A stretch of 63,435 bases of DNA, counting the filler, from Klebsormidium nitens (Eukaryota; Plantae; Klebsormidiophyceae): the NCBI GenBank assembly GCA_000708835.1. It is 5 parts of 5 records of this genome, joined end to end, with 100 filler letters (N's around TTAATTAATTAA, not from the genome) between each part and the next. Parts side by side here need not be neighbours in the genome. Positions count along the whole stretch, not along the records: positions 15,067 to 39,337 come from DF237868.1; 4 more parts are not named here. One strand, written 5' to 3'. Under the pieces are notes generated by a model. It did no database searches. It worked only from the letters and a program-made list of their open reading frames with translations, and had not been told where the DNA came from. Position numbers and translations under genes: made by a program. Position 1 is the stretch's first letter. Every line of letters begins with the position of its first letter. This document shows, piece after piece, positions 13,898-37,737 of the stretch.

Positions 13898-14175
13898 GGC
13901 CTATCCTGGACCCGGAGGTTGCCAGAGTTGCCCGCGACGTCGCGCGACTTTCTGCGATTCTTCGCGACTTTACGCGACTGCTCCGCGACTTTGTTTCGCG
14001 ATCTTCGCGACTTTCACCAAAACCTCACTAAGCTTTCAAGGAAACATGTTTTCAAACAAGTTTTGGGTTTAGATGCTTGCAATGCTCCGCACGTTACGCG
14101 ACTTTTCGCGTCTTTCCGCGACTTTCGTCCGCGACTTTCACCGCGACTCTGCGACCTCCGAGTCCAGGATAGGCC
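13898..14175. mobile_element. Tourist-like (PIF/Harbinger) MITE, 278 bp
   Basis: TIRs of about 30 bp (GGCCTATCCTGGACCCGGAGGT.. / ..ACCTCCGAGTCCAGGATAGGCC) are flanked by a TAA target duplication (13895-13897 and 14176-14178). The interior is non-coding with many CGCGAC(T) copies. Confidence 0.8.
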
Positions 14176-15067
14176 TAAATTAGAGGTGGCGTGCTAACAT
14201 TCAAGGCAATCCTTGCAACACCCGCATTGCATGACCAACCTTGAGGCTCCGCACAGTGGCCGTCGCTCGTCGCCAAGAAGTCCGATTTGGAAGATCAGAT
14301 GGATAGCTCGAACATTAGCAAACGACAGCATCAAGCACATGACACGTACTGATTGGATGAGGCGTCTCCGGAAGCATGGGACATGATGATGTGAAACAAG
14401 TAGGTAATGCTGAAGGTCATAAAGCCTACTGAATCACCATCGCGTCAGTATAGTACTGTTGCTAACGGTCTCCGTATGGTTCGCCTTTTCCGACAGTGTT
14501 GTTGTCTGAGTCCGGTTCGATGGTACTGCTAATAGACGCGAGTGCACTCGTAAGCTGGGTTCAAGAACGCTCGAGGCGCTTGGACGCTGGGTTGAACGCT
14601 CAAGGCGCTCGGATGCCGGTTGAATACGGGGTCCGGTTGCGGTGGATGTTGATAACTTGTCTTAATGAAAGTCGAATTGGAAATGGCGATGCCAATTGAC
14701 TTAACTGAGCCCCCGCTCGAGAAGGCCTGCGGGTTGGTAGAACAGCCCCTACGGACTCTACGGCTTGGCAGGCCAAGATGGGCTGCCATAAGGGTAGGCG
14801 ACGTCGACCATGGTGCCCATAATCTCCAATACCACACTGATCAGAACAACCCAGGTAACTGCAATGCTTGCAACAGGGAAGCTGGGAAGCCTCCTATTGT
14901 ATGGAACCCGAATGACATCTGGCGTCCCGTTCAGTGCACAGGCTGACAGTGTGACGGCGGGGCTAGNNNNNNNNNNNNNNNNNNNNNNNNNNNNNNNNNN
15001 NNNNNNNNNNTTAATTAATTAANNNNNNNNNNNNNNNNNNNNNNNNNNNNNNNNNNNNNNNNNNNNG

Positions 15068-18000: not shown

Positions 18001-18459
18001 CTGACCCGCAACCGGCACCGCTGCCCCGTGCTCTACGGAGCTGCGGGCTATCTCTCCCGCAGGGCCAGCTGGCTGCTCCGCAGGTCCTGCTGGTCTGGCA
18101 GCCCCGCTGGCTGCCAGATCTGGCAGGCCTGCACCTGCAGGCCTGCCCGCAGCTTCTGCGGTCTGCCCCGCAGCTTGGCTGGCTGCGGGCTGCTCCCCCG
18201 CTGTGCCTGCACTCCCGGGGTGGGCCTCTGCTGTTGCGGAAGTGGGGGCAGCTGGCAATGCTGCCTCCCTGCTGCTGGCAGCCTGTTCTGCTGGTTGCTC
18301 CGCAGCTTCCGCTGCGGCGCCGGGGCCTGGCGCTAGAATTTCGTTGGCCCTCCCGGGCCTCCTGCTGGTTCCCGCGGGCAGCGGGCTAGTGTCTGAGCCT
18401 GGAGCCTCGCCCTTCAAACGTGCTGACTTCCTAAGTTGCCCTTGGGCGCCACCTTGCAT
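15068..18459 (-). pseudogene. Disrupted intron-containing gene of unknown function 3' of the Gypsy pol (possible accessory ORF)
   Basis: A chain of same-strand ORFs (17608-18459, 16656-17720, 16083-16559, 15833-16189, then in-frame continuation to the gap at 15067) is joined by two frameshifts, one or two stops, and a plausible in-frame GT-AG intron (RALFE|LGHPYF). It includes an Ala/Pro-rich N-terminus, acidic tracts and an NLS-like PPAKKRSRRR. Confidence 0.55.
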
Positions 18460-18879
18460 CTTGCTTTCAAGTTCTGATCTGCAAGTGACTGCTGGAACTT
18501 GATCAGCAGTCTTCCCTAACTTCAGAGTTCACAGTGTAACGTGACCTGCGGGAGGTTGTCAACTTTGACTTTGACCTCCACTAAACGCGGCCCAAATTTT
18601 GCCACGTGGCAGCCCCGCGGTTGCCCGCCGGTAAATTGGACCTCGACCGTCGAAAATTGACCCCTCGCGCGCGCGCGGAACTTCTCAAGTCCGCGCGACG
18701 CGCGGCTGCTACCTAAATTAACCGCGAAGGCCGCCCGCGACTCCGCGGTGGGCGAAATTAATTTTCCGCACCCCTCCGCCAAGCGGAACCTCCGGCCGCA
18801 CTTCCCCGTAGAGGCGGAATTAACCGCTCGCGCGCCGCTCCAAACGCGGCGTGCCCCAAACGCTGTTTTTGCGGTCGCG

Positions 18880-21800
18880 CTACTCCCGGACCGCGCCCCG
18901 CGGTTGGTAGGGAAATAGCAGAACGATGTGGCGGGTCCAGCGAAGGCCTTGTGCGTCCTCGATCACTGCGATCTGGCAGGAATCATCGTAAAAGTAGCGG
19001 AAGAAGTACGGGCCTTCCCAGCCCGCGTCCAACTTGTGCTCGCGCCTGTTTTTGCGCATAATCACGACCTGCCCTGGCGTCAGGTTGGCAACTCGATAGA
19101 CGCCCCTGTGCTGGCGCCTCCGGTAGGCCGCCTCGCTCCGCACCTGCGTCACGTCCCGATTGGCTGAAGCGGCGGCCCGCAAGTTGGCCTGGTGTGCCTG
19201 CCTCAGCAAGATGTTGAACCGCCGAGTCGCGGTCAAGTCGCTCACCGCGGCCGTCACGTCCTCTGCGGCACGCTCCTGAGCCTCGTCTGTTTGAGCCTCG
19301 CCAATCATGTACTTGGCTGCCAGAAGGCGTTCTGAGGGCAGCACGGGCTGGCGACCGTAGATGATCTCGAACGGCAAGGCCCTGGTCGCCGTCCGGAAGC
19401 AAATCCTGATGATGAGCAGGGCCAGGAAAAAGTTCTCTGCCCACTTCTGGCCGTGGTCGAGCGCGAGCTTGCGGATATTCTTTGTCAGGATCTTCACGCT
19501 CGACTCGGCCGCTCCGTTCTGCCACGGCGCAAACGGCGTGATCGGCGTGACCTGCGTGCCCATGGCGTCAAAGAGCTCCTTCACCTCGTCCTTGTACAGG
19601 TCGTTGTCCATCACGGCCGTGGCCGGGCAGGCGTGCCCTGCAAACAGGTCCATCTTAGCCCATGCGGCCACCTCCTTGCTCTGCTTGGTCTTCCCAAGGC
19701 CGGCTCCGACCCAACCTGAAAAGTAGTCGTGCCACAGGTACACGTACGTGTAGCCCTCCGGAGTCGGGGGGAACGGGCCGAGCAGATCAACGCCGACCCT
19801 CTCCAAGGGCAAGTCCACCTCCGTGCTAGTCAGCGTGCGCCCGTCCGTCCGCTCGCGAGTCGGTTGGTTCACCGGTTGGCAAGTGGGGCAGCCGCGGACA
19901 AAGTTCGTGACATCTTCTGTGATTCCTTTCCACCAGAACATGTCCCTGATGAGTTTGAGTGTATTGGGTATTGACGGGTGGCCCCCACGGTCGTGGATCT
20001 GCTTCATCACCAGGTCCCTCTCCTCCGCGGTCAGCACGGGCTTGAGTACCGTGGGCCCTGGCACCTGCTTACGTCGGCGCGGTGCCTTGTTCTGAACATA
20101 GAGCCTCCCGTTCCTGACCTGAAATTGCTTAGCCCTGTTTCTGATTCCGCGCCTTGCTTCCTTGCGTCGGCTTGGAGTCCTCCCGCTCAGGTCCGGATAT
20201 TGCCTCTCGAACAGGTACAACGCTACCTCATCGTCGTTGATCAGGTAGTCCAACGGCCGCGGCAGCGGAGAGTGCGCGATGTCAAACTCAGGCTGCTCCT
20301 CCTCGTCCTCGTGGGGGCTAGCCTCTGTCGCGCTCACCTCCGACTCTGGTCCCTCCTCCAGGTTTGCCAGCACGTTCTCCTCCAGATTGTCGCGCGCATG
20401 TGTTTCCAAATTGAGCAGCACGAGCCGCGCCTGCCTTAGAGCTTCCCGTTCTTCTGCGTCCGGATTTGAGATCATGATTGAGAGTGCCACGCGCTCCAGG
20501 GCGGTCGTCCCCTCCAAAAACGGTGCGTCCCCGCCGTTCCTGATGAAGCGCGCCTTCCTCCGGAGCTCGTGCGCGGCGTCCAAAGATTCTTCGTTCTCAA
20601 GGGAGCCGTTCAGATCAGCTTCCCGCAGAGCGGACGCCGTGCGCAGGTAATCTTCGATGTCCCAGCCGAGTGTGGGGTCAAGATCCTGTCCGCGGATTTC
20701 CTCCAAAGCCTCCGCCACGGCGGGGTTCTCCACGGCTGGCTCTAGGGCCTCGCGCGTGCCCTGTGCGGGTTGCTCTAAGTCCAGTTGTGCAGGTCCAAAA
20801 GAGCCGGTACTTCCTTGCACCATTTGGATAGTGGCGGACCTGACCTCCGTATTCGCAGGGGCATCGTCCAGTGCCGCTTCCTCGAACAGAAGTGCCAGGT
20901 CACGTTCCAAACCCGCCCCTGATTCCTGGCGCTCCTTCTGACTCTGCGCTTGGTCCGCGCTGAGCTCTTTCAAAGGCGCGTTGAGTGTGGGCCTTCTGTT
21001 GGTCCGGGGCAGCTCAGGTGTGCGAGGTTCGTTCGCGTCGTCCTGAAAGTCCAGTCTCCTGCGCACCGGCCGCTCCGCTGGTCCCAGTTCTTCGCAGTCC
21101 GACTCGTGCGGGTCATCGTCCTGGTCCAGATGCATAGCCACGCAGTCGATGCAGTTCTTGGCGCGCCACGACACTAAATCCCAGGCCTCTCTTTCCAGCT
21201 CCGCTTCCCTGGAAAAGTACTCCCGCCGGATTCGGTTGCGCGCCTCGTCCATTGATTCCACGTACATGGTTCTGCGTCGGAATTTGTTGTAAGCTCTCCG
21301 CCCGGGAGCAAGCTGGCGCTCTCGCGCATCGAACTGGTTCAGCGGGTACCTCCGGAAGATCTCCCGGAAATCTGGCTTTGCCTTGCCCCGCCATGCCTCC
21401 AAGTACACCTGGCGTTGCTCCTTCCCCTGCTTCTGCCAGCTTTCGAAGGCGGCGCGGTCCCCGCGCATTTTGGCCTGATGTTCGCGATGCCGTTCCTCGT
21501 ACTTCCTCAAGAAGATCGCGTCCATCTTTCCTTCGTAAAGCGCCGCTCTCTCGTCCTGCTCCTCCAGCTCGGCCGCTCCGTAGCGGCGCTCGTTCAGGTC
21601 GACGTCGTCATCTGGTACGGAAGTACGCGCCCCTCTGGCTGCGCTGCACGGCTTGCACGTCCTTGGCTCGAGGAGCTGCGGATCAACCCGCTTCTTTGCC
21701 GGCTTGGTTTGACAGTCTGCAAAGAAGTGCCCTGCTTTGCCGCAATCAGAGCACTCCTTGGCGCTTCGCTCCTGTGCGACGTGGGTTTGGCCCTGGTCGG

Positions 21801-22035
21801 CTGCATTCAGGTCCTCCGCCTCTTGAGTAGGATGATCAACTGCTCCCTCGCTTAGAGCGGCGTCCCGGACGCTCAAGACCATGCGGACTGTAGGGTGGGT
21901 GGGTGGGGTTATTCCAGGGTCCTCCGCCGTACGAAACCGCGGTGAGTTCTTCTGCAACCAGCGGAGTGAAATAAACGCTGGGATGGTGTCATCAAACCGC
22001 TGCCAGGGAGGCGGGTGCCGCAGGCGGCGCCACAA
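18880..22035 (-). pseudogene. Pol C-terminal part: CCHC knuckle, long spacer, integrase
   Basis: CSDCGKAGHFFADC knuckle; integrase zinc finger HDRGGH..CPTC; catalytic core VGVDLLGPF..VMDND..NGAAESSV; C-terminal WEGPYF (GPY/F) motif; no chromodomain visible. Confidence 0.9.
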
Positions 22036-25000
22036 GGGGTCCTCGTCCCGGCGGTTCTACTTGTTGTACGCCTCCTGTACCTCAGGAAAGCGAACGGCCA
22101 GGTCAGCAATCATGATCCTCTCGTGCGCTAAGCGTTCCTGCAATTGTGAGCGCTTCCTGTGCCAGAAGCGGAGCTCGCTCTTGGCCCCGCGCAGCAGGTT
22201 GCGGAGTCCTGTTTCCGTCTCCTGCTGTTCCGGGTCCTCGGGAAAGCGCGTGAGCGGATCCCGCTCTTCCGGAGTGGCGATGTCGAACGTCTCATACAGG
22301 ACCTCCTCGCCGGGTGGCAAGGTTGCAGGTGCGGGCAGTGCGGGAAACGGTGTGGCAATCGGTCCGTAGCTTGATGTGTGCGGCGTCCGTGGCTGGGTCC
22401 CCTGCGTGGATGCTCGCTCAGCGGAGACCCAGGGGGGGTCCTGGCCTTCGGTTTGGGTTGCCCGCCAGCGCGGATCCTGGCGAGCGGGCTTCCACAAAGC
22501 GTACTCCTCCAGCAGGCTCGGCCACGTCCGGGCGCGCGCAATCACAAATCGCCGCTCTGATTCGAACCTCTGAGTTCGGGCTCGAGCCAGCGTGTGCGCA
22601 TACTCAATGGCTTTCTTGAGGGCGTGCAGCGCAGCTCGAGCGGCGTCTGGGCAGCACGGGGAGGACGTGGCACGTAAAAGCTGTCGCTGTCGCTGTCGCT
22701 CGTGTCGGTGCCGGACGTCGACCACACGGGGCTGAAGGACTCGTCCTCTGTGTCCGTGTCAGGTGCGGGGCCTGATCCCCGCAACATGCGAACTGTGGGC
22801 GCCCTGCAAATTGGGCCTGGTGCGGTGGACAGGTCCGGTGCCACGTAGGCCGGCATGTCTTCCAGGTCGCTGGCCTCTTCCCATGGCAACTGGGCCACGG
22901 GGTTGCGCAACAGCGGATCCACGTTCGAGTGCACTCGGCCGGGGCGGTACTCGACCCTGAAGTTGAACTCCATCAGGCGGATGTGCCAGCGCGCGAGTCG
23001 TCCTGTCAAGTTGGTCTGCTGATGCAACCAAACCAACGGGTTGTGGTCAACCCGCACCAGAAACGTGGGCCTGCCGTACAAGTACGACCGGAAGCGGACG
23101 GTCACCGCCCAGACAATCGCCAGTAGCTCGCCGTCCGTGGTGGAGTAGTTAGCTTCTGCGCCGTGCAACGCCCTTGAGGCGAAGGCTACGGGGAGCTCGC
23201 GATCGGCCCCGTCCAGCTGGCTCAGTGTGGCGCCGATACCCAGGCGGCTATAGTCCGTGTCCAGGATGAATGGCCTGTTGAAATCTGGGCGCGCGAGCCC
23301 CTGTNNNNNNNNNNNNNNNNNNNNAGGAAGATCGCGTCCATCTTTCCTTCGTAAAGCGCCGCTCTCTCGTCCTGCTCCTCCAGCTCGGCCGCTCCGTAGC
23401 GGCGCTCGTTCAGGTCGACGTCGTCATCTGGTACGGAAGTACGCGCCCCTCTGGCTGCGCTGCACGGCTTGCACGTCCTTGGCTCGAGGAGCTGCGGATC
23501 AACCCGCTTCTTTGCTGGCTTGGTTTGACAGTCTGCAAAGAAGTGCCCTGCTTTGCCGCAATCCAAACACTCCTAGGCGCTTCGCTCTTGTGCGACGGGG
23601 GTTTGGCCCTGGTCGGCTGCATTCAGGTCCTCCGCCTCTTGAGTAGGATGATCAACTGCTCCCTCGCTTAGAGCGGCGTCCCGGACGCTCAAGACCATGC
23701 GGACTGTAGGGTGGGTGGGTGGGGTAATTCCAGGATCCTCCGCCGTACGAAATCGCGGTGAGTTGTTCTGCAACCAGCGGAGTGAAATAAACGCTGGGAT
23801 GGTGTCATCAAACCGCTGCCAGGGAGGTGGGTGCCGCAAGCGGCGCCACAAGGGGTCCTCGTCCCGTTCCACCTGTTGTACGCCTCATGTACCTCAGGAA
23901 AGCGGACGGCCAGGTCAGCAATCATGATCCTCTCGTGCGCTAAGCGTTCCTGCAATTGCGAGCGCTTCCTGTGCCAAAAGCGGAGCTCGCTCTTGGCCCC
24001 GCGCAGCAGGTTGCGGAGTCCTGTTTCCGTCTCCTGCTGTTCCGGGTCCTCGGGAAAGCGCGTGAGCGGATCCCGCTCTTCCGGAGTGGCGATGTCGAAC
24101 GTTTCGTACAAGTCCTCCTCGCCGGGTGGCAAGGTTGCAGGTGCGGGCAGCGCGGGAAACGGTGTGGCATTCTGTTCGTAGCTTGACGTGTGCGGCGTCC
24201 GTGGCTGGGTTTCCTGCGTGGATTCTCGCTCAGCGGAGACCCAGGGGGGGTCCTGGCCTTCGGTTTGGGTTGCCCGCCAGCGCGGATCCTGGCGAGCGGG
24301 CTTCCACAAAGCGTAGTCCTCCAGCAGGCTCGGCCACGTCCGGGCGCGCGCAATCGCAAATCGCCGCTCTGATTCGAACCTCTGAGTTCGGGCTCGAGCC
24401 AGCGTGTGCGCATACTCAATGGCTTTCTTGAGGGCGTGGTTGCAGCGCAGCTCGAGCGGCGTCTGGGCAGCACGGGGAGGACGTGGCACGTAAAAGCTGT
24501 CGCTGTCGCTGTCGCTCGTGTCGGTGCCGGACGTCGACCACACGGGGCTGAAGGACTCGTCCTCTGTGTCCGTGTCAGGTGCGGGGCCTGATCCCCGCAA
24601 CATGCGGACTGTGGGCGCCCCGCAAATTGGGCCTGGTGCGCTGGACAGGTCCGGTGCCACGTAGGCCGGCATGTCTTCCAGGTCGCTGGCCTCTTCCCAT
24701 GGCAGCTGGGCCACGGGGTTGCGCGACAGCGGATCCACGTTCGAGTGCACTCGGCCGGGGCGGTACTCGACCCTGAAGTTGAACTCCATCAGGCGGATGT
24801 GCCAGCGCGCGAGTCGTCCTGTCAAGTTGGTCTGCTGATGCAACCAAACCAACGGGCTGTGGTCAACCCGCACCAGGAACGTGGGCCCGCCGTACAAGTA
24901 CGACCGGAAGCGGACGGTCACCGCCCAGACAATCGCCAGCAGCTCGCCGTCCGTGGTGGAGTAGTTAGCTTCTGCGCCGTGCAACGCCCTTGAAGCGAAG

Positions 25001-25120
25001 GCTACGGGGAGCTCGCGATCGGCCCCGTCCAGCTGGCTCAGTGTGGCGCCAATACCCAGGCGGCTATAGTCCGTGTCCAGGATGAATGGCTTGTTGAAAT
25101 CTGGGCGCGCGAGCCCCTGC
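21511..25120. repeat. Two diverged ~1.8 kb direct copies (21511-23304 and 23327-25120) either side of a 20-N gap
   Basis: Offset of 1816 at both ends. The copies differ by scattered substitutions and two compensating 4-nt indels. Confidence 0.92.
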
Positions 25121-26700
25121 GCTGCGCATATGGAGTCCTTCAGGGCCTGAAAGGCTGCCCGCTCTGCCTCCTCCCAACGGAACGGAACCCCGTCCTTTGT
25201 CAGCTCGTGCAGAGGCCTCGCTATCTTTGCGAAGTCTTTGATGAAGTGCCGGTAGTAGCCTGCCATACCCAGAAAGCTGCGGATCTCGGAGGGATTGATG
25301 GGATCAATCCAGTCGCGGATTGCGCGAACCTTCTTAGGCGCGGGTAGCAGCAGGTTGTGCGTGACGAGGTGACCCAGGTGCTCGGTCTCGCGCGCGCCGA
25401 AGTGACGTGACTTGCCGGGGCAGAGTTTCAGGTCGATTGTAATGACCTTCTGCAGTACGCGCTCCAAGCCTGCAAGATGAGCGTCAAACGTGGAGGTGTA
25501 CAACAGCGTATCGTCCAAGTACTGAGTCACGCACGCGTCCGGGCCCTGAATTTCCTCCTTGAGCAGCTCGTCCATCATAAGCTGGTATGTCCCCGGAGCG
25601 CCCGTGAGTCCGAACGGCATGCGAAGAAACTCGTACAGGCCCCTGTGGGTCAGAAAGGCTGTTTTGTGTACGTCGTCCGGGTGCACGGGAATCTGCCAGT
25701 AGCCCGCCTGCGCGTCCAGCGTGGTGAAGTAGCGCGCCTCTCCAAGGCGATCGAAAATTTCCGAGATGCGGGGCAGTGGGAACCTGTTTGGTACTGTCGC
25801 CTTGTTGAGCGCCCTGTAGTCAACGCAGAACCGCCACTTCCCGTTCTTCTTGCGGGCTAGTACCACGGGCTGAGCGTAAGGGCTGGTGGAACGGCGAATT
25901 ACGTGCCAAGCCTCCATCGGGTCAACCTGCTTGTCAATCTCCTCCTTCTCAAACGGGCTGTGCAGGCGGCCTGCCCTGCGGATGGGCGGGTGGTCGCCCG
26001 TGTCAATGCGGTGGTAAATGCCGCGTACCAGCCCCAAATCACCAGGATCCTTGGAGAACGCGTGCGGGTACCGGCGAAGCAAGGCGATCATTCTGGCCTT
26101 CTCGTCCGGGCTGAGGCTAGCGGCGAGCTGGAGTTGCGGCTCCACGGCGCGCCACTGCTCCTCGTCGCTGAGCCGGGGAAGGGGCGCTGCTTCCACGGTG
26201 GGCAGGGTGGCCGCGACGCGAACGGTGTCAGGTGGTGACGAGTCGCTCCGGGCTGGCTCCTGGCAATCATCTGGTAAGACCTCGACGCGAAAGCCTTTCC
26301 CTAGTACCAGCGGAAGCAGATCCGACCGTAGCAGGTAGCAAACCTCGTCCACGTCGTGGCCCCGAAACAGGTGGTGGTAGTGTTCAGATAGGTCTTCGTA
26401 CTCCTCGGAGCTGATTCGGGACAAGGTCAGAAGATGGTCGAGCAGGCGCCGCACCTCGTGCATAGAACGGAACATGATTCCAAAGGTGTAGTCCTGGTCC
26501 ACCTGCGGAGTCCCATTAAAGTCAGAGACCCACTCTATGTCGCTCTCGTCGACCTCTCCGTGACCCGGCCCGGTCCGGCGGCGTGGGGCTCCCGTTCGGC
26601 TTGGGGAGCCCGCCTTCGGGGCCAGGGTCTGGATCGCGCTTGGCGGGTGGGCGAGCGGCGTCTGCTGTCTCTTTGCAGGTCCGCTGGACTTTGCGAGCAC
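23689..26700 (-). pseudogene. Pol reverse transcriptase and RNase H
   Basis: KKNGKWRFCVDYRALN, LDAQAGYWQI, MPFGL, YLDD, FLGMAGYYRHFI, FILDTDYS..GATLSQ, NYSTTDGELLAIVWA and DPLSR motifs. Confidence 0.95.
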
Positions 26701-26775
26701 GTCCGCTCAAGAACGTGGCAGGGGAAAGCCGTAACCCCATGGGAATCGACGCGAAGCGCCCCCTGCAGTCGGCCG

Positions 26776-28350
26776 TCACCGGGAACCCGGGAGCGCAGCC
26801 ACGCCGGACCGATCACTACCACGGGCAGGTAGCTCTGCTGAGCGGAAGTAGTCGTCAGGCTCCTCGTCGTCGGATTCCTCGCCAACTAGCGGCGGTGGCT
26901 CGTCCTGGTTGTCCGGGTGCATTTCCGGCGGCGAGCCCTGGCCGCAGTTTTGAGCAGATCCAGCTGCATCCCGCGCTACTTCGGACGGCCCGTCCCTTTC
27001 TGGGTCCCTGCTAGGCCCGTCCGGGGGTGCGCCCGGCGAAGGGTCGTCGCCGCTGTGCCCCTCAGGGTTGGAAGGCCTCTCCTCGCTCCACGAATTGCGG
27101 GGCATCATCGACACGATTCCTGTACGCATGTCAACCTGGAAGCGCCACCCAGGTACGCGGCGGGGCACATGACGTGGAGGACGCCTTGGGGCTGTCCTTG
27201 CAGCCCGCGCTGTGGATTCCTCGTCCTCGCTCTCCGAATCGGAGTCGCCAGGCAGAAGATCTGGGAGGTCGTCATCAGTCGCCTCGCCGGATAGCTCCTC
27301 CCTGCACAAGAGATCAAGGTCGGCGGCGCGTTCTTCCTCAGGATCCTCGAGTTGTTCCTCCGGAGCTTCCACCAGCGGCGGCACGTCCTCGTCTGAGCCT
27401 GGCGCGTCATCGGGTAAATTGTTTTGCGCTGGCGCAGCGAGAGTGTGCTGTCTGTTCTCCGCCAGACCATCTGTCCACGGCGCAGCGGGTAGAACGAGCG
27501 CGTGAGGGACCATAAACTCGCTCAGGTCCAGAAGGCCGGCTTCGTCCGGGGCCTGGTGCAGGTCGTCGTCTGGAAAGTTGTAGCGGAACAGTGACGATGT
27601 CCTCCGGTCCGAGCGGGGCCTGCGTGCCGGTGCGCGAGCGCCGGGCCTAGCGCGGACAGAGCTCGTGGCCACCGAAACGCGCGGCCTGCATTGTACACCC
27701 CGCGGATCGACCAAAGGCAGGGCCAGGCGGCGTTTGCTGTACGGTAGCTGAAACTCGAACCGCTCCTTCTCGAAGTTGATGTGCCCGTTGATCGCTCGCA
27801 TAGACGTCGTGCCCAAGAGAAGATCGTAGTTGATGTGGTCTTGCACAATGAAGCGGGAGCCCAGCTCGAAGCTGCTGCCCATGCCAATTAGAGTGTCCAC
27901 CCAACCAATTGCTACGGTCTCGCGCCCGTCCGCACCTGTAAAAGTGGGTTTGCCCTTCCTGAACTTCGCACCCAAGTCTGCCCTCATCATAGTTTTGAAG
28001 GCCATCACGTTCACGTCCGCGCCAGAGTCGATGCCTCTCGGGCAACGAAGCGCGTCCACGCCTCCAATGCGCACTGGAATGAAAGCGATAGGAGTCTTCT
28101 TTAGCGGGTCGACGAACACCCGCTCCACCGTGCCTCCTCCTTCAACCTTGCGAATTGTGCTCGCTGGTACCAATCTGCGGGCGCCCTGCCTGGCCAGTGA
28201 TTGACCAGCCTTACGCGCGGTGCTCGCTATTTCGCTAACCATGCTTGGGCTTCCGTGCTGAATCAGGGTGTCAGTGGGAACCCAAGCGACCGGGAACGTC
28301 CCAGTGACGGTGGGCACGTTGCTGGCGCCCATCTGTGCGGACGACGCCAT
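26776..28350 (-). pseudogene. Pol aspartic protease plus acidic disordered linker
   Basis: IDSGADVNVM active-site motif and DLLLGT flap-type motif. In frame with the RT ORF across two TGA stops, and in frame with ORF 28435-29043 across one TAG. Confidence 0.85.
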
Positions 28351-28795: not shown

Positions 28796-30058
28796 TCAGC
28801 GCCCTGAATCTCGAAAGTTTTTGTAGCTTTCGTACGGGGACGCCACTCCGCTGCCGTAAGTCCAATGAGCGGTGTTGGGACCGTCAATGGGCGGAAGCGG
28901 GCACTCCTGCTTGAAATGACCTGCCTTCCCGCAGTTCCAGCACGTGCGGGGACGCCCGTCTGGGCCCCGGCCTCGGCCCCTGCCCCTCCAGGGTCCGCTT
29001 CGTCCTCCGCGATCCTGGTATTGGCCGCGGTCTTGTGGGTCACGTTCTGGCTGGTTCTCCTGACGCCTGGCCGGCGGGCCAGCCTGTTGGCGCCCGTTCC
29101 CCTCGTGGTGAGGATGCGGTGAGGGGGCGCGCGCCTCTTCGTGGGCAGGCTTCTCCGATTCTACTGCAAGCCTGACAGTCCGCCTGGGGCTGCGGTCGCG
29201 CCCGGAGCGTTGCTTGACCTCCAGTTGGTGAATGATCTCCTCCGCAGCCTGTACGGCTTCGTCCATCGTGCGGTAGGTCTGGCCCAACATTCGGTCCTGC
29301 ACCTTTTCCGGAAGCGCCTTCCTGAAATAGTAGATGCGCGCACCGTCGTCCGCAATCTTGGCCTGCTCAAACATCTCGCCCATGCGAACGGAAAAGTCGT
29401 AGGCTGTCTCGCTCGTATCCATGCGCATGATGTCAATCCGGTTTAGGGAGTCCGCCATCTTGACGTGCCCGTACTGCTTGAGGAACATCCCTTTGAGCAA
29501 CTCCCAATCGTCTTGAAGCTCGCGGTCGTACCTGGCTTTGTAACCGCGCTCCTCTGCGTAGAACCACGCGCTCGCTGTCCCTGTCAGATTGTAGGCGAGG
29601 GCCATACTTTTCTGGCGGTCCGTGACGTCGCGGTTGCCACTGAATAGCATCTCGAGCGAGGAGATGAAGTTGTACGCGGCCGGGCCCATCTCGCGCTTCT
29701 GTCCCTTGAACGCGGCCACTTTGGGGGGCTGATGAATCTTCACGAGCTTGTTGGCAGGTGCTCGGACTTCCGCGGGCAGGACTGGGGCCACTGCGTAAGT
29801 AGGCGGTGGAACAAACGCGGGGCGCAGACCTGCATACTGATCTGGGGCGTAGGCAGCTTGGCCGTAGACGTTACCTGAATGTGCCATGGGTACCGCGGGG
29901 GCAGCGGGTAACTGGACCGGCGCTCCGCCCTGTGGGATATGAGTCGCGGTCACATACACTGGTGCTGGAATATGGCCTCCGGCGCTGGGCACCGGCGCAG
30001 GAGGAGGCGGGGCCCCGTGCATCACGTATGCTGGCGGGTAGACGGGTGCACCGTACAC
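28796..30058 (-). CDS. Gag (capsid-like helical domain + CCHC zinc knuckle)
   Basis: Retrotrans_gag-like segment LTGTASAWF..WELLKGMFLKQY, RGG-rich tract, and CWNCGKAGHFKQEC. Confidence 0.85.
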   Translation of the reverse strand: MYGAPVYPPAYVMHGAPPPPAPVPSAGGHIPAPVYVTATHIPQGGAPVQLPAAPAVPMAHSGNVYGQAAYAPDQYAGLRPAFVPPPTYAVAPVLPAEVRAPANKLVKIHQPPKVAAFKGQKREMGPAAYNFISSLEMLFSGNRDVTDRQKSMALAYNLTGTASAWFYAEERGYKARYDRELQDDWELLKGMFLKQYGHVKMADSLNRIDIMRMDTSETAYDFSVRMGEMFEQAKIADDGARIYYFRKALPEKVQDRMLGQTYRTMDEAVQAAEEIIHQLEVKQRSGRDRSPRRTVRLAVESEKPAHEEARAPSPHPHHEGNGRQQAGPPARRQENQPERDPQDRGQYQDRGGRSGPWRGRGRGRGPDGRPRTCWNCGKAGHFKQECPLPPIDGPNTAHWTYGSGVASPYESYKNFRDSGR

Positions 30059-31263
30059 TCCTGCAGAGACCTGACCAGCCGTCGGGCCAGGTACAACGTA
30101 AGAAGTGTCAAACGTCCCTGACTGAGCAAATCCCGCGGGCGGCGTAGGTGCGGGAGGTCTGTGCCCGGCTCCAACACCTGAGGCGGCTTCCTGGCAAACC
30201 CGCTCAGCTCCCTTGATGCTGGGGCGTACGGATAACCCCTCATCGTGGGCTGAGGCCCCTGAACCTGATCCAACAATCCTGTCGCTTCTGTGCGCCCCAC
30301 CGTGGGCGCCCTCGGTTCTGCCGCAGGTGCATTTGCTGGCGGGGGGAAGACGTACCCAGGAGCAAGGGCAATTGGGGCCTGCATATTAAACGCCGGGTAG
30401 CCATCTTCCCTCGCCCTGTACCTGATCGCTTCGACCTGAGTCTCTTGACCCTGGCCCAGGCCGCGGGTCAGTGCGCTCTGCGCTGGGGTTTCGTGTAATG
30501 CCCTGGTCGTTCCCCCGCCAAACTGCACATCGCGAGCGGTATCGTGATGCGTCAATCGCTGAGTTGCACCTGCGCCTGCGTGAATGGACGGATTGAATAG
30601 CCACTCCGGGCGAAGTCCCCGCGCCTCGCTAATAAACCCTGGTGCTCGCTGTTCTGCAGAGGCGCGCGCGGGCTGAGGGGTCAAGAAGGCAGGCCGTGCT
30701 TGTTCGAACGGGGCACCTGCATTCTGAACCTCGTTCCGCAGACTAGGTGAGCCAGTCCGCTCGTCTCTGAAGGTCTCCCGCTCGGCCCTCAGAAGTCCTC
30801 CCCGCGGGGATAGCCGAGGCCACTCCTCGTCGTCACTCGGCTCGCGCCCAATCTCGCGCGCTGAAGCGCGAACGCCTCCGCCACCTGCCTGTTGGAATGC
30901 CAAGTTCTGAGCAGCCCGCAGCTCGTCCTCCACCTTCACTTCACGTTTGGACTGAGCCTGTTGAGAAATTTGAACACCTCGAACGCGCACGTCCTGAGAT
31001 GCCATTTCCTGAGGGCCCTCAAGTGCGGTGGTGTCCCACAAGTCTTGCCTCTGGGTATGGTCACGGACTTCACCGTCCGTTCTCTCTCCCTCCCGAGCGG
31101 CTCCCATTTGGGCTGCATCTGGGGGGGGCCTGGTATCACGGGCTGGCTCTTGAGGCCCCACTTCAACGCCTGTACCGGGTTCTTGCGCAGCACCTCCGCG
31201 GAGCAGCGTTCCCTGGCGAGTAGTGATGCCAATCAACTCTGTTGGAATACCGCTGTACGCCAT
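30022..31263 (-). CDS. ORF upstream of gag (413 aa, low complexity); probably the frameshifted Gag N-terminus or an extra ORF0
   Basis: Long open frame starting with ATG about 60 nt after the leader hairpin array and overlapping the gag ORF by 37 nt in another frame. No recognisable domain. Confidence 0.5.
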   Translation of the reverse strand: MAYSGIPTELIGITTRQGTLLRGGAAQEPGTGVEVGPQEPARDTRPPPDAAQMGAAREGERTDGEVRDHTQRQDLWDTTALEGPQEMASQDVRVRGVQISQQAQSKREVKVEDELRAAQNLAFQQAGGGGVRASAREIGREPSDDEEWPRLSPRGGLLRAERETFRDERTGSPSLRNEVQNAGAPFEQARPAFLTPQPARASAEQRAPGFISEARGLRPEWLFNPSIHAGAGATQRLTHHDTARDVQFGGGTTRALHETPAQSALTRGLGQGQETQVEAIRYRAREDGYPAFNMQAPIALAPGYVFPPPANAPAAEPRAPTVGRTEATGLLDQVQGPQPTMRGYPYAPASRELSGFARKPPQVLEPGTDLPHLRRPRDLLSQGRLTLLTLYLARRLVRSLQECTVHPSTRQHT

Positions 31264-31323
31264 CTAGTTGTGGGTACTCGTCCAACTTCCCGTGCAACGG
31301 AGTCTTCAAATCTTTAACACGCT

Positions 31324-31644
31324 CCCTGCTTGACCGCAAGGCTGATCACTTTCTCCCCTGCTTGACCGCAGAAGATAAGGTCCTCCCCGCTTGACCACGG
31401 GCAGACTTCACGTCCTTCTCTGCTCGACCGCAAGAATCCTGACCTCCCCGCTTGACCACGGGCAGACCACGTTCCGCTCCACTTGACCGCGGAGTCTTCA
31501 GGTCCTTTCCTGCTTGACCGCAGGAATTACGTGCTCTCCCGCTTGACTACGGGCAGACCACGTTCAGCTCCACTTGACCGCGGAGTCTTCAGGTCCTTTC
31601 CTGCTTGACCGCAGGAATCACGTGCTCTCCCGCTTGACCACGGG
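31324..31644 (-). repeat. Array of 11 stem-loops with a conserved GGTCAA loop (element sense) in the retrotransposon 5' leader
   Basis: CT(T/C)GAC cores on the + strand at 31329, 31361, 31390, 31423, 31451, 31482, 31513, 31542, 31573, 31604 and 31633 (spacing 28-33 nt). Each is flanked by complementary arms, e.g. TTCCTGC-TTGACC-GCAGGAA. Confidence 0.9.
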
Positions 31645-32361
31645 TGTAACGATTACGACTGGTTAAGCCTAACCTCGTTNNNNNNNNNNNNNNNNNNNNN
31701 NNNNNNNNNNNNNNNNNNNNNNNNNNNNNNNNNNNNNNNNNNNNNNNNNNNNNNNNNNNNNNNNNNNNNNNNNNNNNNNNNNNNNNNNNNNNNNNNNNNN
31801 NNNNNNNNNNNNNNNNNNNNNNNNNNNNNNNNNNNNNNNNNNNNNNNNNNNNNNNNNNNNNNNNNNNNNNNNNNNNNNNNNNNNNNNNNNNNNNNNNNNN
31901 NNNNNNNNNNNNNNNNNNNNNNNNNNNNNNNNNNNNNNNNNNNNNNNNNNNNNNNNNNNNNNNNNNNNNNNNNNNNNNNNNNNNNNNNNNNNNNNNNNNN
32001 NNNNNNNNNNNNNNNNNNNNNNNNNNNNNNNNNNNNNNNNNNNNNNNNNNNNNNNNNNNNNNNNNNNNNNNNNNNNNNNNNNNNNNNNNNNNNNNNNNNN
32101 NNNNNNNNNNNNNNNNNNNNNNNNNNNNNNNNNNNNNNNNNNNNNNNNNNNNNNNNNNNNNNNNNNNNNNNNNNNNNNNNNNNNNNNNNNNNNNNNNNNN
32201 NNNNNNNNNNNNNNNNNNNNNNNNNNNNNNNNNNNNNNNNNNNNNNNNNNNNNNNNNNNNNNNNACCCGAAGAGTACACCGCGCTTCCTTCCCCGAGGGA
32301 ACAGCCTGTTCCTGAGGGAGGGAACAGCTCGGTTCACCGCTTCGGTAGTAATTATGTTACT
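31645..32361 (-). mobile_element. Gypsy 5' LTR (mostly in a gap; right boundary tentative)
   Basis: Begins TGTAACGATTACGACTGGTTAAGCCTAACCTCGTT, identical to 60870-60904. An imperfect inverted terminus GTAATTATGTTACT lies at 32348-32361. Confidence 0.6.
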
Positions 32362-32671
32362 GGCCCGCGGACAAAGCAATCAGTTCCGCATAAGATGGCA
32401 GGGAGTGCCTCGAAGCCGACGCCGACGGCTCCGAAGAGTTTCGAAGGAATGGCCACTTGAGAAGGTGCCAGCTGGGCTTTCCTCTACTGTGTACTGGTCA
32501 ACAGACCCAGAAACTCTGTTTGAAAATTGATGATCAGCGAGCACTTTCTAGGGCACTTCCCAGCCGTGTGCGCGGATTGGGGGGTGATAGCAGAGCAGCT
32601 GAGCAGCGCTATCATCGGCTATGGCGGGCTCTGCAGTCTTCCCAAAGCTTGAGCACTTCTGGGGGGGCAGA

Positions 32672-35600
32672 ATGGTGGAGCAGCATGGCGGAGTCATGCA
32701 TTACTTCTGCTCAAGCTTTGTTCCCCTGGTCGTGAAGAAGTTGAACAGCGGTGGTCCTTCCAGGCACAAGCGAACGGTTTCCCATCGACAGCGCATCTTC
32801 ATCCTCTTGCTAACCCTGTGCACTGTAGTTGGATTGCACTTCAGCTGGACTTCCCAAGAAAGTGTGAGTGTGATATAGGAGTTGCCAATATGGAGGCAAT
32901 TGTGGAGTTACAGCTACTAGTGTCACTAGTCTTTCATTGCATATGCATGCATAGGGTCTGGTGGATGGCTCCCTAATACATGCGAGCCGCTGGATTCCTG
33001 TTGTCTTCCCTTTCAACATATTTGCTCGCTTGCCCCTCAAGTCGAATAAGGCTTTTGTCAAACTCCTGCAGATTCCACGAGACAAAAACCATCTGAAACC
33101 TTGGGATAGTCAGGACAGCAGCTTGCAAAGTGCTGATTGGAGGCAGGCTTTCTTTCACTACTTCGTTCAACTGCCTATATCTTCCCTGCTGATTGCACGC
33201 AGTTATGCTGCACGTGCAAGTACGTCACAATCACAGCTACACCACCTCCATCAGCACAACCATCACATCTCACGCTTGCTGGGATCACCTCACACACTCG
33301 CTGGAGCTGAGTCAGGCCACTGGTTTGACTCATTGGAATGTGAAAAAAGCAGGTGGTTCTTCTGCACTGATGCAATCCACGGTCAAGTAGGAAATGGCTG
33401 CACCACTGTGTGTTGGGTACTGTTTTGTGAAATAAGCACTGCTGACCAGCTCTGACCACTTGTGGTTCCCACCTGCTGTGACCAATCTCACTTCATTTTG
33501 ACTATCTTTTGATCATTCACTTGTCAATGCCATGCTTCTTTTTTAGGATCAACATGAGAGCCGTGATCTCTTGGTGATTACATCTTCTAGCAATTGCGTA
33601 TCTTGGCGTTGATTTTGCTATTTATTTGCCTTCTACTCACCCATTTTTTGTTCACTTCAGGTGTCTTTATCTGTGAGCAAGGAGCCATTGCTAATCTATC
33701 AGCAGTACCACAGTGTGGGAGCTCATTCCCATCTTTACAACAGCACGTTTCTGTATCGGGGTCTCAATCAGGTCAGTTCAATCTTGCTTCCCTATGTATT
33801 TCTTCCTACAATGAAGGAGACATACTTTTTGACTGATCGTCAAAGCTCGTGTCTTCCATTAGGGAGCGACCTTTGTTCTCAATAGTGCTTGTAGGAATGA
33901 GCATTTTCCTTTGTTGCCTCTTCCCTTCGTTGACTTTCACATCATGTAGCATTGTTGTCACTTGAGTTCAGTCTTTCAACGTCATCTACTCTTTTCACAG
34001 CTTTTCCAAAAAGCTTCGACTCCGCTGACAGGACTGGCCAACGTGTGGCTTGTAAATTGCTTGCCTTCAACCACGCCCTTTATAACCATGGATTTTGGGC
34101 CACCATTTCGAACGTCAATGTTGACAGATGAGGGCCACAGAAGACACCATCATGCGTTCATTGCAGGGACATATGAGTCATAAGATATACCTCCTTAATA
34201 CTCAGAAGAGGTTGAGGTGGGCAAACAAAGCATGGGGCGATGTTGCGGAATGAAGTGACAAGTTAATACAGTGCTTAGTGGGGTTTCGAAGCTCATGATC
34301 TTGGACACTATTTTTCCTCCCGAGAACGTGGAAGTACAATTTTGCGTATTTTTGCTTGTGATGATTTGCACCGATTAACGCACCTCTGCTGCACCTAACA
34401 CGCCCGCGTCTGCAGGCGGAAGGATGCCTTCGCCCCAGCTCACGAGACTTGGACGCGGTTCCTCTTCTCAAGATCAACACCGACTCCTACTACCAGAATC
34501 TCATATGTGAATACACTGGCATCTTAGCGGTCGCCGCTCATGCAAGAGCGTTGCATCCTCGCCCCTGGGTTGGCTTTCAAAGCTGGAGGGCAGCTCAGAA
34601 GGGGGTGAGAGGAACGTCTACTTGACTGAGGTGCTGATTCGAATTGGTTGAGGGGACTGAGCGATGCATGTTCTGACAAGACGTGAGAAGGAAGCCTTGC
34701 TGCCTTCGCGTTGTCCATCAAGAGTAGTTAGCTCTCTGCAGCAGAACCCGAGTAGTTTTGTGCGTGCTTCCTATGCCTCTTCACGTCCACGCCACTTCGA
34801 CTTGCACTTACTTGTACTTCGTAGCTAGTATCTCGAAAGTACGATACAGTTTCTAGTGTCAATTTATTGCTTGCTGCTAACAACTCCCTGCGAAATAAGA
34901 TGCAGACTCAGTGCTCCCGCAAAGGTGCCTCTTTTCTTGCCAAAGCTGACTCGAACCATCGAGAATCTTTAGACAGACACTCGAGTCTTATTTTTTTATC
35001 GAAGAAAGTCCTTAAACAAAGGACGTGCTATTTTCTGTCTTTCCTCCACGATTCCTGGGTACGTTCCTCTCCGTTGAAGTTGATAAGCCAGGCCTTGAAG
35101 CAACTTCCCTTCCAATGTGTCCGGACAGTCTCCACGTCAGCATGACGCCATCCTGACCTCATGGTCTCGCCTTGCAGTTTGCTCTCCAACCACGGGCAGA
35201 AGCGTCTCTCTTGAGCGCGATTAGCAGTCGGGCGCACGGGGACGCGCTCTACTTCTGGTCGGATGGCGGGTTTCCGGGGGAGCACATCAGTGACTTTTAC
35301 GGGCATTGCAACTTCATACACGAGCACTGCAGGCAAGTGAATCGTTGTTGTTGTTCTTGAGTTACGAGGTACCTAGACGTGACAGATTGAAATGGGCGTC
35401 GCGCATTTGTTGTTCTGAGATAATTTTACGGCTATAGTCTGGGCTTCTTGGAAGAAAGGCAGTTACTTTCAAAAAAGTTGCTTGACAGAGCTGAGCGGAA
35501 AGCATGTTTCGTTTCTGTCGAACCAACCCCGTCCAAACCTGACTCCTCAGCAGCTTGCTTGTTGATCAGAATCCGGAAGAACACTCTTCCTTCTTTGAAG

Positions 35601-37737
35601 GGGACCAAGCAGTCTTCTTGACCGTTGAGACCGACAATCGAAGTTCGTCTGCTCATCATGACGATCGGAGAGACGTCCACTTCGAAGCTCGCATGGTTTT
35701 TCTGTTGGCATCTCCCGGACGGTCTCTTCGTCATCGTTTCACAACAAGTTCACATAGTCCCCTCCTCGTACCGTCCTTCGATCAGAGCAGCTTCTTCCAG
35801 TTGTGCGGACATCTCCTTTTCAATGGGTCTGCGCCCCCAGTCTCAACTCCTAAGACAGGACATAAGCTCCACGGGGATCTGAGTCAACCCGTTTACCCAC
35901 TTGTTTGCTGCAGCAGAGTCTTTGCTGACGTCACGAAAGAAGTCTTGGGTCGCCACGCTGCCGACCCAGCCGCGTACTCCGGGGCACCCCCGATGCCGGT
36001 CGACGGCGGGACGTACGCTTTCATGAGCTACTTCGTTCTGCCCACGGAGAGCCTAGTCGAGTACGCTCGTTTTGCAAAGTGAGTTCACTCCTATTCTGAC
36101 GTCAGTATGTTTTGTGATTATGCTTGGGTTGGTCGAGGCTTGAAGATTCAGCTGACAGAGATGAAGTTGGATTTTCGTAAGGAAGAGGATAAGGATAAGG
36201 ATAAGGATAAGGATATTTCGTAAGGAAGAGGCACTGCAGCGATCTTTTTGACGGGTTCGCAATGATGTTTCTTCTGTTGCCTTCGCTGCTCTGATGAGGA
36301 TCAGCCAAGTATGACGACACTGTCGTTTGTGAAAGGCGACCGTTTGAGGCCGCGTGTTGCGTTTGCCGTTGGCCCCTCTATTTGCGATTACACACGTATT
36401 TCGGTTTCGTCGCGTTCAGCCTGATGGCGCTATGCCTCTGAGCTTGATACGGATCTCCGATTTTGAAACTGCTTCGAATTTTCTTGCTGCTGTCCGCTAC
36501 CGGAACCCCTTCAGAGATTTGCCATATTCATGTTGTTTGTCGGAGGAAGCGCATCGCACTAAAGCTTCGAGGAAACCATCAGCTCTGAAACTCCAGGGTT
36601 CCGGACCTGTGAGCCTTAATCACACAGCTGTGCTCAACATGCTACTTTGCTCCGCGGCTCGAGGGGCCCACATTGGCCCAAAAACACCTGGCTAAAGTGC
36701 AAAGCGTGGAACGAATTTTTTTTGCGCGTGGCGGCCTGGCTTTTCCCAAGTTAGCTAACCTCTTCTTTCAACCACGCATACAGAGCGGCGATCGTGGCTT
36801 TGGACGACTCGTATTACTACCCGCACAAGGACGGCGGGTTCTGCATCATGGCGCACGGCGGCGGGGGAGCAGATGCTGCCTACGAGGTGAGTGTGCTGTC
36901 GCCCACCTAACGGGGACCTCTTTATCGTCCGTCGTACAGCGGTTTTGTACACGCAAATGTTAGCTGCAAGGATTCGTTGCCCCCTCTTCGAAGCCGTTGT
37001 AATTGTGAAGCTCAACCCTGCGCGAACTTTGAACGATTGAAAACTTTTTCCCTCCACCCTCCGAAGTGCTTGTCCAGAATTGGGTTTAGCGAGTACCAGG
37101 TTTGCAGGAAGACACGAACTTCAAATCTAGTTAAAATGTATTTCTTTGCAGTCGAGTCACTGTTACTGCTACATCCTGGAGCGGCTAATTAACGTGTGGG
37201 CGTACCACACTGGCAGGCGCATGATCTATGTCGACGCCACAACGGTAAGCATCCCAATGCTTTTTCTTGTAAAGCCTCTCCGTTTGTCTGATGCATTGAA
37301 CGTGCAGTCTTGCTCATACGGGCCTGTGTGGCTACGTGGCCTTGGTGACCCACTGAGTAGGAGTCCAATTGCGTTTCTTGTCGCCACGCTCGCGAGACAT
37401 GAGAGTCTGCCCAGTCACCGGCATGGTGAGAACCCCGTAGGAGTGCTGCAACGTGGATGTACTCCCTCGCAAAAGAAGAGGCAAGGACCTCATTTTCGAC
37501 CTGTGAATACATCTCTACCTATCTCTCTCGACAGGGATAGAGATTGCTGAACCTCTGATACTCTGCGTCTTGCCACAGGGGAATATGGAAGAACAGCACG
37601 CGTTATCTAATCGCACAATGTGGATGCAATGGTTTCAGCCTCCGCACTTTGAAGAGAGCCTAGAGAAATTTGAGACGTTCCATAACGAGAATGGAAACGG
37701 TCGAAACCTGTTACGGCGATTAAGTGAACAGGGATAG
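32672..37737 (+). CDS. Multi-exon type-II membrane protein, putative glycosyltransferase-associated (DUF4422-like); 5' exons uncertain
   Basis: An N-terminal TM segment (RIFILLLTLCTVVGLHF) is present. The 3' exons splice in phase: KVLKQRTCYFLSFLHDSW|FALQ..DFYGHCNFIHEHCR|VFADVTKEVL..YAFMSYFVLPTESLVEYARFAK|AAIVALDD..|SSHCYCYILERLINVWAYH..|GNMEEQ..SEQG* (TAG 37735-37737). The family call is recalled resemblance only. Confidence 0.6.

Follow-up and report, generated by a model that had tools for sequence, protein, structure and literature searches.

Is a tandem repeat in the leader of a retrotransposon a plain minisatellite, or can it be kept for the fold of the RNA that it would encode? The question is raised by a short part of the genome of the streptophyte alga Klebsormidium nitens (scaffold DF237868.1; assembly GCA_000708835.1) contained in the 63,435-nucleotide stretch of DNA analysed here as a whole, which we call the window. 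At 31324..31644 on the minus strand, this scaffold carries eleven tandem units, each predicted to form a hairpin with a stem of 5-8 bp and a loop that reads GGUCAA or is a one-base variant of it. The original prediction had placed this array in the 5′ leader of a Gypsy element and proposed that it is under selection as an RNA structure rather than being a simple minisatellite. Hairpin sequences are given below for the minus strand, the sense strand of the element.

The retrotransposon that carries the array

As judged from the Pfam domains of its minus-strand ORFs, the array-bearing element is a Ty3/Gypsy retrotransposon in minus orientation, in line with the original prediction. A Gag ORF with a Ty3 capsid and a CCHC zinc knuckle (28796..30058) is followed by the Pol ORFs (18880..28350 overall), namely protease (26776-28350), RT/RNase H (23689-26700) and integrase (18880-22035), all on the minus strand and in the Ty3/Gypsy order. 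The closest RT relatives are K. nitens retrotransposon proteins (63-71% identity). Ahead of Gag lies ORF1 (30022..31263, minus strand), a disordered protein of 413 aa with no Pfam family, which is part of the annotated protein KFL_009190040 and whose N-terminus weakly matches the first ORF of a related element (L003). The full protein search with ORF1 and Gag returned, besides the protein annotated on this scaffold, only a bacterial protein that is unrelated. The two ORFs overlap by 37 nt (30022-30058) in different frames, and the public gene model joins them via a predicted intron. Since several frame breaks separate the ORFs of the element, the assembled copy may be defective or dead.

Elements of this group are about 15.5 kb long, and the 3′ LTR of the present one probably lies beyond the end of the scaffold. 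Downstream of the integrase, the minus strand of 15067-18880 holds several overlapping ORFs with no Pfam family; in position, this region corresponds to an annotated ORF of 1484 aa in the related element L002 (in the region 13121-17950). The RNase H-to-integrase part of pol also shows a 1.8-kb direct duplication (21511-23303 and 23327-25119, 97% identity) around a gap of 20 N, which is probably a scaffolding artefact or the trace of two collapsed copies.

At its coding side, the array is separated by 60 nt (31264..31323, minus strand) from the first ATG, that of ORF1. No ATG occurs on either strand of the 416 nt from 31264 to 31679; we considered the absence of upstream AUGs as evidence for the functional strand and rejected it, as the antisense strand is equally devoid of ATG. 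At its other side, the array directly adjoins the end of a very high-copy repeat (31645..31679), with a summed contig depth of about 2×10^5 against 15 for its unique, single-copy neighbours in two independent studies, and many contigs with differing flanks start at 31643-31645. On the element strand this repeat ends in ...TTACA, like an LTR end, and it is a candidate LTR end, MITE or satellite. No inverted partner, as the idea of a terminal inverted repeat or MITE would call for, was found after the neighbouring gap, and about 60 kb of other K. nitens loci contain no copy of it, perhaps because repeats of this kind were collapsed into gaps.

Next comes an assembly gap (31680..32264, 585 N), in which the 5′ LTR and the primer-binding site probably lie; the DF237868.1 piece contains neither a direct-repeat (LTR) pair nor an iMet-type primer-binding site. 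The array thus likely occupies the leader of the element, and it could also belong to the end of U5, since the LTR and the primer-binding site lie outside the assembled sequence. An annotated multi-exon host gene (405 aa; 32621-37737, plus strand) starts about 356 nt past the gap and diverges from the element, which therefore lies in or next to the promoter of this gene; the GC content, about 62% in the element, falls to 42-53% on the host-gene side.

Eleven hairpins with a common loop

Both TRF and a motif scan recovered the expected eleven units some 30 nt apart, the actual spacing being 28-33 nt across 31324-31644. TRF reports an array with a period of about 29-31 (31353-31643) and another one with a period of 91 (31390-31644, 2.8 copies). 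With up to one mismatch allowed, the window contains 17 sites that match GCTTGACCRC, as compared with 4.3 ± 2.3 in shuffles, and 11 of these 17 sites fall within 31328-31641, all on one strand. On the minus strand, the loop reads GGUCAA in nine units, GGUCGA in unit 4 and AGUCAA in unit 8, as the original prediction had it. Between the hairpins lie spacers of 10-14 nt that consist of 68% purines.

The stems differ between units and fall into three recurring types. Type A (CCCGU/GCGGG) comprises unit 3 (31386..31401, CCCGU-GGUCAA-GCGGG, −12.0 kcal/mol), unit 5 (31447..31462), unit 8 (31538..31553), which bears the AGUCAA loop, and unit 11 (31629..31644), which touches the high-copy repeat. Type B (CUCCGC/GUGGAG) is found in unit 6 (31477..31494, CUCCGC-GGUCAA-GUGGAG, with one G-U pair) and unit 9 (31568..31585), and type C (UUCCUGC/GCAGGAA) in unit 7 (31507..31526, UUCCUGC-GGUCAA-GCAGGAA, a perfect stem of 7 bp) and unit 10 (31598..31617). 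The other units are individual variants outside these types: unit 1 (31324..31341, CCUUGC-GGUCAA-GCAGGG, 6 bp with one U-G, −9.7 kcal/mol), unit 2 (31354..31375, UCUUCUGC-GGUCAA-GCAGGGGA, 8 bp with two U-G, −11.3 kcal/mol) and unit 4 (31416..31436, UUCUUGC-GGUCGA-GCAGAGAA, 7 bp plus one bulged G, −5.2 kcal/mol), the weakest hairpin of the array. All units are on the minus strand, and the stems quoted in the original prediction (those of units 1 and 2 and of types A, B and C) as well as its single bulge, that of unit 4, proved exact.

Successive units of types A, B and C make up a three-hairpin higher-order unit of 91 nt. Its duplication, also noticed before, is borne out by two full copies that are 97% identical (31447-31537 and 31538-31628, i.e. 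31447..31628, minus strand). A decayed twelfth unit (31288..31315, minus strand), which has kept the type-B spacer and 5′ arm (GAAGACUCCG) with a UUGCA loop and a stem of 4 bp, lies on the ORF side. From the position of this relic, the array appears to be oldest next to the ORF and youngest in the 91-nt block at its opposite end. No Rfam 15 covariance model matched 31200-31679, even at E ≤ 10.

Predicted fold, covariation and strand asymmetry

The strand on which the array folds best is that of the element. The minus-strand RNA has an MFE of −156.5 kcal/mol (z −4.2) with all eleven hairpins present, as compared with −119 kcal/mol (z −2.6) and two intact hairpins out of eleven for the plus-strand RNA, so that the strand-specific folding proposed as a check came out on the side of the sense strand. 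Taken singly, the sense hairpins have energies of −5.2 to −12.0 kcal/mol, and the summed single-hairpin energy is −111.3 for the sense against −75.4 for the antisense strand.

The variation between stems respects their pairing. In an alignment of the eleven units with one homologue from another element (L002; see below), 89.3% of the stem cells can pair; shifting the 3′ partners by 1-3 columns lowers this share to 38-51%. The alignment reaches a covariation score of 0.554, while shuffles give 0.371 ± 0.041 and none of the 500 scores as high, though the aligned units are paralogues from one assembled copy, with about seven distinct stems and about four to five independent compensatory events, so that the independent evidence is smaller than the number of rows. 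Changes on both sides occur in four of the seven stem pairs; for instance, pair 9-20 is C-G in seven rows and U-A in five, with no mismatch. The array thereby presents, as a prediction, what is typical of a psi-type region, i.e. stable stem-loops with exposed purines, together with covariation.

The imperfect pairs are unevenly distributed between the strands. Over the seven stem columns, the sense strand shows 12 G-U cells and 3 A-C cells, and on the antisense strand these counts are exchanged, which agrees with the earlier remark that plus-strand A-C mismatches become G-U pairs on the minus strand. Within contiguous stems, these cells reduce to about five independent transition mismatches, all of them C-to-U in the sense strand; a single G-to-A change of that strand is found in unit 4, the weak one. 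With about five independent events, the sense-strand G-U asymmetry is suggestive (binomial p ~0.03). A mutation bias acting on one strand is an unlikely cause of it, because G>A and C>T changes are nearly equal in the copies of the family described below.

Other copies of the family

For other copies of the element, contigs of public K. nitens runs were compared with the assembled copy over 30400-31679, and the following figures refer to the variants listed in this comparison. Further, diverged copies of the array are visible in these same-species contigs, and none of the six listed variants at stem positions breaks a sense pair. In one contig, unit 4 carries three changes (31419 T>C, 31433 and 31435 A>G) by which a perfect 7-bp stem replaces the bulged one. 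Elsewhere, 31481 A>G turns a G-U into a G-C pair, 31476 G>A creates an additional pair, and 31524 G>A leaves a G-U pair in the sense strand. The loop of unit 4 also differs by copy, being GGUCGA in the assembled copy and GGUGAA in others. Among the variants listed, other copies further show insertions of 1-12 nt, deletions and diverged units in the array, which thus varies between copies as tandem repeats of minisatellite type in UTRs do. Among the public runs, the array sequence was found in no RNA run.

In one run, the family copies show G>A at no fewer than 29 places and C>T at no fewer than 32. Deamination of methylated cytosines on both strands of K. nitens transposons has been described (PMC5890265), and the near-equal frequency of the two changes would fit such a two-strand process. 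In the neighbouring region 30400-31300, other copies show clustered G>A or C>T changes, of one kind per contig, and at one loose contig end every G is replaced by A. This decay of the family copies resembles hypermutation and agrees with a deamination of methylated DNA in the transposons.

Short decayed pieces of the array were also found under a second species label and in a mine-tailings metagenome. Scans of metagenomes and viral sequences for three CTTGACC motifs at the array spacing yielded only unrelated short-period repeats, and a Gag search in viral contigs gave no match.

A single U5 hairpin in a related element

As a step towards the origin of the array, we compared nine related loci with RT 60-71% identical, five of which (L001, L002, L003, L250 and L251) have a readable LTR end and leader. 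The hairpin array is absent from all five and is thus dispensable for the clade. The search for further leaders with a hairpin covariance model, as the original prediction had recommended, was unproductive: in about 230 kb of Klebsormidium-type loci, the model matched only its training sequences.

One relative nevertheless possesses the hairpin as a single unit. In L002 (K. nitens DF237703.1; LTRs at 2506-3682 and 18041-19218), both LTR copies contain in U5 the hairpin CCCGC-GGUCAA-GUGGG, which ends, on its 3′ side, 24 nt ahead of a primer-binding site of the tRNA-iMet type. It is present in the MFE fold and aligns with the type-B units. Like the units of the array, it displays the GGUCAA loop on the same strand, with a stem of 5 bp that includes one G-U; unlike them, it occurs once per LTR, inside the LTR and upstream of an identified primer-binding site. 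A weaker hairpin, GCCU-GGUCAA-GGGC, stands 142 nt upstream of it. In the related loci, only 7 of the 82 GGTCAA sites outside the array have a flanking stem of at least 4 bp, and four of these seven are the L002 LTR hairpins. Other relatives have U5 hairpins with other loops at the same place. On these sequence comparisons, the hairpin motif is older than the array, and the array is specific to this element family.

The leader of L002 carries a repeat of its own between the primer-binding site and gag (L002:3748-3859, four copies of 28 nt), which is unrelated to the array and unstructured (z +1.3); hence leader repeats arise in this clade without hairpins. The comparison of the two sequences shows, so far as they represent the clade, that leader minisatellites were born in it repeatedly and independently.

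Common to the LTRs of all the related Gypsy elements of Klebsormidium type is a conserved 10-nt motif, GGTATGGGAC (L001:8312; L002:3451 and 18987; L003:5181; L249:12218; L250:469; L251:847), which occurs nowhere in the window. By pattern match, an iMet-type site follows this motif at about 210-250 nt in L002, L003, L250 and L251, and a degenerate iMet-like site, read by eye, follows it at about 190 nt in L001. No tRNA gene was found in the related loci. In the array-bearing element, we considered the type-A motif UGGUCAAGCGGGAGA beside the repeat end as a primer-binding site, a near-identical 14-mer being present in L001, and rejected it: in L001, the corresponding motif is part of the LTR and precedes GGTATGGGAC, with the iMet-like site about 265 nt further on, and the motif does not fit the 3′ end of a standard tRNA.

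A proposed sense-strand RNA platform and its alternatives

Together, the covariation, the G-U asymmetry and the pair-keeping variants of other copies argue for a constraint on the sense-strand fold, as predicted from these sequences, over a plain minisatellite. The central claim of the original prediction thus stands in its direction, tempered by the small number of independent events behind it, about four to five compensatory and about five G-U ones. The Gag-binding, dimerisation, translational-control and decoy roles that it listed are, for their part, conjectural. We tentatively propose, as a reading that we hold to be possible rather than probable, that the array arose by lineage-specific tandem amplification of a U5/leader stem-loop and was kept as a sense-RNA structure that serves as a multivalent protein-binding platform, most plausibly for the nucleocapsid part of Gag. 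The starting unit would have been a small stem-loop like the single L002 hairpin just upstream of the primer-binding site, which would have multiplied in tandem within this lineage. Its fold would have been retained in the element-sense strand, i.e. in the leader of a genomic or messenger RNA, if the array is transcribed as we suppose. Such an RNA would display at least eleven near-identical GGUCAA-type loops on variable stems, with purine-rich single-stranded spacers between them, which is how multivalent protein-binding signals are built. This cis-acting platform would bind a protein in a multivalent manner, and the element's own CCHC Gag makes Gag the obvious candidate, through its nucleocapsid knuckle; the number of copies might then raise the avidity for packaging or assembly. 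It is by inference that we speak of transcription of the array, of hairpins in vivo, of a binding partner and of an effect on packaging. Dimerisation through kissing loops was also considered and rejected, as GGUCAA is not self-complementary and could form only a weak 4-nt pairing with G-U.

In a neutral origin, a palindromic unit would promote template switching or slippage while being reverse transcribed or replicated and so expand into a minisatellite, and the apparent compensation would stem from intra-strand templated correction of quasi-palindromes. Tandem repeats in the UTRs of plant Ty3/Gypsy elements are common, hypervariable and attributed to aberrant strand transfer (PMC7004042), and the unstructured 28-nt repeat of L002, the recent 91-nt duplication with its 97% identity, the decayed ORF-side units including the relic at 31288-31315, and the indels in other copies all speak for it. 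However, templated correction gives arms with perfect Watson-Crick pairing and not a decay limited to sense wobble pairs, nor does neutrality predict that pairing be preserved in all listed variants of other copies, or that the loop stay constant across diverged unit types and in L002; we regard this origin as rather unlikely. The array could instead work at the level of DNA, as a block of W-box (WRKY) TTGACC sites that acts as an enhancer or insulator in the 5′ untranslated region (for the W-box, see PMC6486541). On the plus strand, 10 of the 11 units contain TTGAC[CT], the variant TTGACT being the other canonical W-box form, the spacers contain ACGTG cores, and the LTR of L002 carries the W-box-like motif twice in the same orientation; besides, eleven sites in 320 bp resemble the gypsy insulator, with its 12 sites in 340 bp of 5′ UTR (PMC2374998). 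The W-box motif is only 6 bp long, and hence weak evidence, and the TCGACC of unit 4 breaks its TGAC core. Moreover, an array of such sites leaves unexplained why the inverted flanks differ by unit type and yet are complementary, and why wobble mismatches are restricted to one strand, which makes this role unlikely in our eyes.

U5 stems beside the primer-binding site assist primer placement and strand transfer in avian and murine retroviruses, and a multiplied U5-type hairpin might likewise aid reverse transcription at these steps. The sole homologue outside the array does lie in U5, just upstream of the iMet-type primer-binding site of L002, and other relatives have a U5 hairpin, with other loops, at the same place. 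But such a helper needs no eleven copies, the window has no visible primer-binding site, and we know of no complement of the GGUCAA loop in plant initiator tRNA, so that we consider this role very improbable. Returning to the sense-RNA platform, we also envisage a stronger version of it, in which the array would be a natural counterpart of the engineered hairpin arrays of MS2 type: a multiplied stem-loop with compensated stems would give the genomic RNA avidity for its own Gag, hairpin-rich copies would out-compete their sisters for packaging, and new units would be added at the end of the array that faces the LTR. This version, taken as a whole, seems to us unlikely.

Comparison with known systems

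The original prediction knew of no described equivalent, which was too strong a statement in view of the repeated stem-loops of RNA viruses and of the DNA-site array in the gypsy 5′ UTR (PMC5869531, PMC8206606, PMC6281560; PMC2374998). The packaging signal in the nsP1 region of alphaviruses consists of eight stem-loops tipped by GGG, the number of which matters for capsid recognition (PMC5869531), and "repetitive structural motifs" and dispersed packaging signals have been described in RNA viruses (PMC8206606, PMC6281560). Like these signals, the array is a series of short hairpins in which a fixed, G-containing loop motif is combined with variable stems (PMC5869531, PMC8206606, PMC6281560). 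In contrast with it, the viral signals lie in coding or leader RNA and form no head-to-tail tandem repeat with a higher-order unit. The array also differs from them in belonging to a retrotransposon of a streptophyte alga.

In the psi regions of retroviruses and retrotransposons, stem-loops are bound by the CCHC nucleocapsid; in MMTV, for example, Gag binds purine loops close to the primer-binding site (PMC8096270). The array resembles such psi regions in its likely position between LTR and gag, in the exposure of purines and guanines in loops, in its purine spacers and in the CCHC Gag of its element, but psi regions consist of a few unlike stem-loops, whereas the array has eleven near-identical ones.

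In the insulator of Drosophila gypsy, 340 bp of 5′ UTR contain 12 Su(Hw) sites (PMC2374998). It shares with the array its superfamily, its scale (about a dozen sites in some 330 bp) and, in all likelihood, its place between LTR and gag. In gypsy, however, the sites are motifs of double-stranded DNA (YRYTGCATAYYY) that are separated by AT-rich spacers and lack the potential to form hairpins, whereas the core of the array is embedded in covarying inverted repeats. The Su(Hw) consensus YRYTGCATAYYY with AT-rich spacers was not found in the array, the units of which read GCTTGACCRC with purine- and GC-rich spacers. The array also resembles the UTR repeats of the plant Ty3/Gypsy elements Tat/Ogre, tandem arrays that are likewise short and hypervariable and are situated in a non-coding part of the element (PMC7004042). 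Those repeats, however, are found in the 3′ UTR, neither a hairpin structure nor a fixed loop has been reported for them, and they are regarded as neutral, whereas the present array is on the 5′ side and has a predicted structure. In the literature on retrotransposon leaders and packaging signals, we found no such hairpin array in a retrotransposon leader. The design principle is known from RNA viruses, and tandem repeats are known from Gypsy UTRs.

Significance

To our knowledge, very little is known about how RNA is selected for packaging in the LTR retrotransposons of plants and algae. If the sense-RNA reading is true, the array would offer a simple and testable handle on packaging, with one hairpin, one loop and one protein, and the minisatellites of Ty3/Gypsy UTRs, which are usually treated as neutral, could be under structural constraint. 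Should the array function as DNA instead, it would be an algal equivalent of the site array in the gypsy 5′ UTR. The finding is relevant mainly to transposon biology, RNA structure and the genomes of streptophytes.
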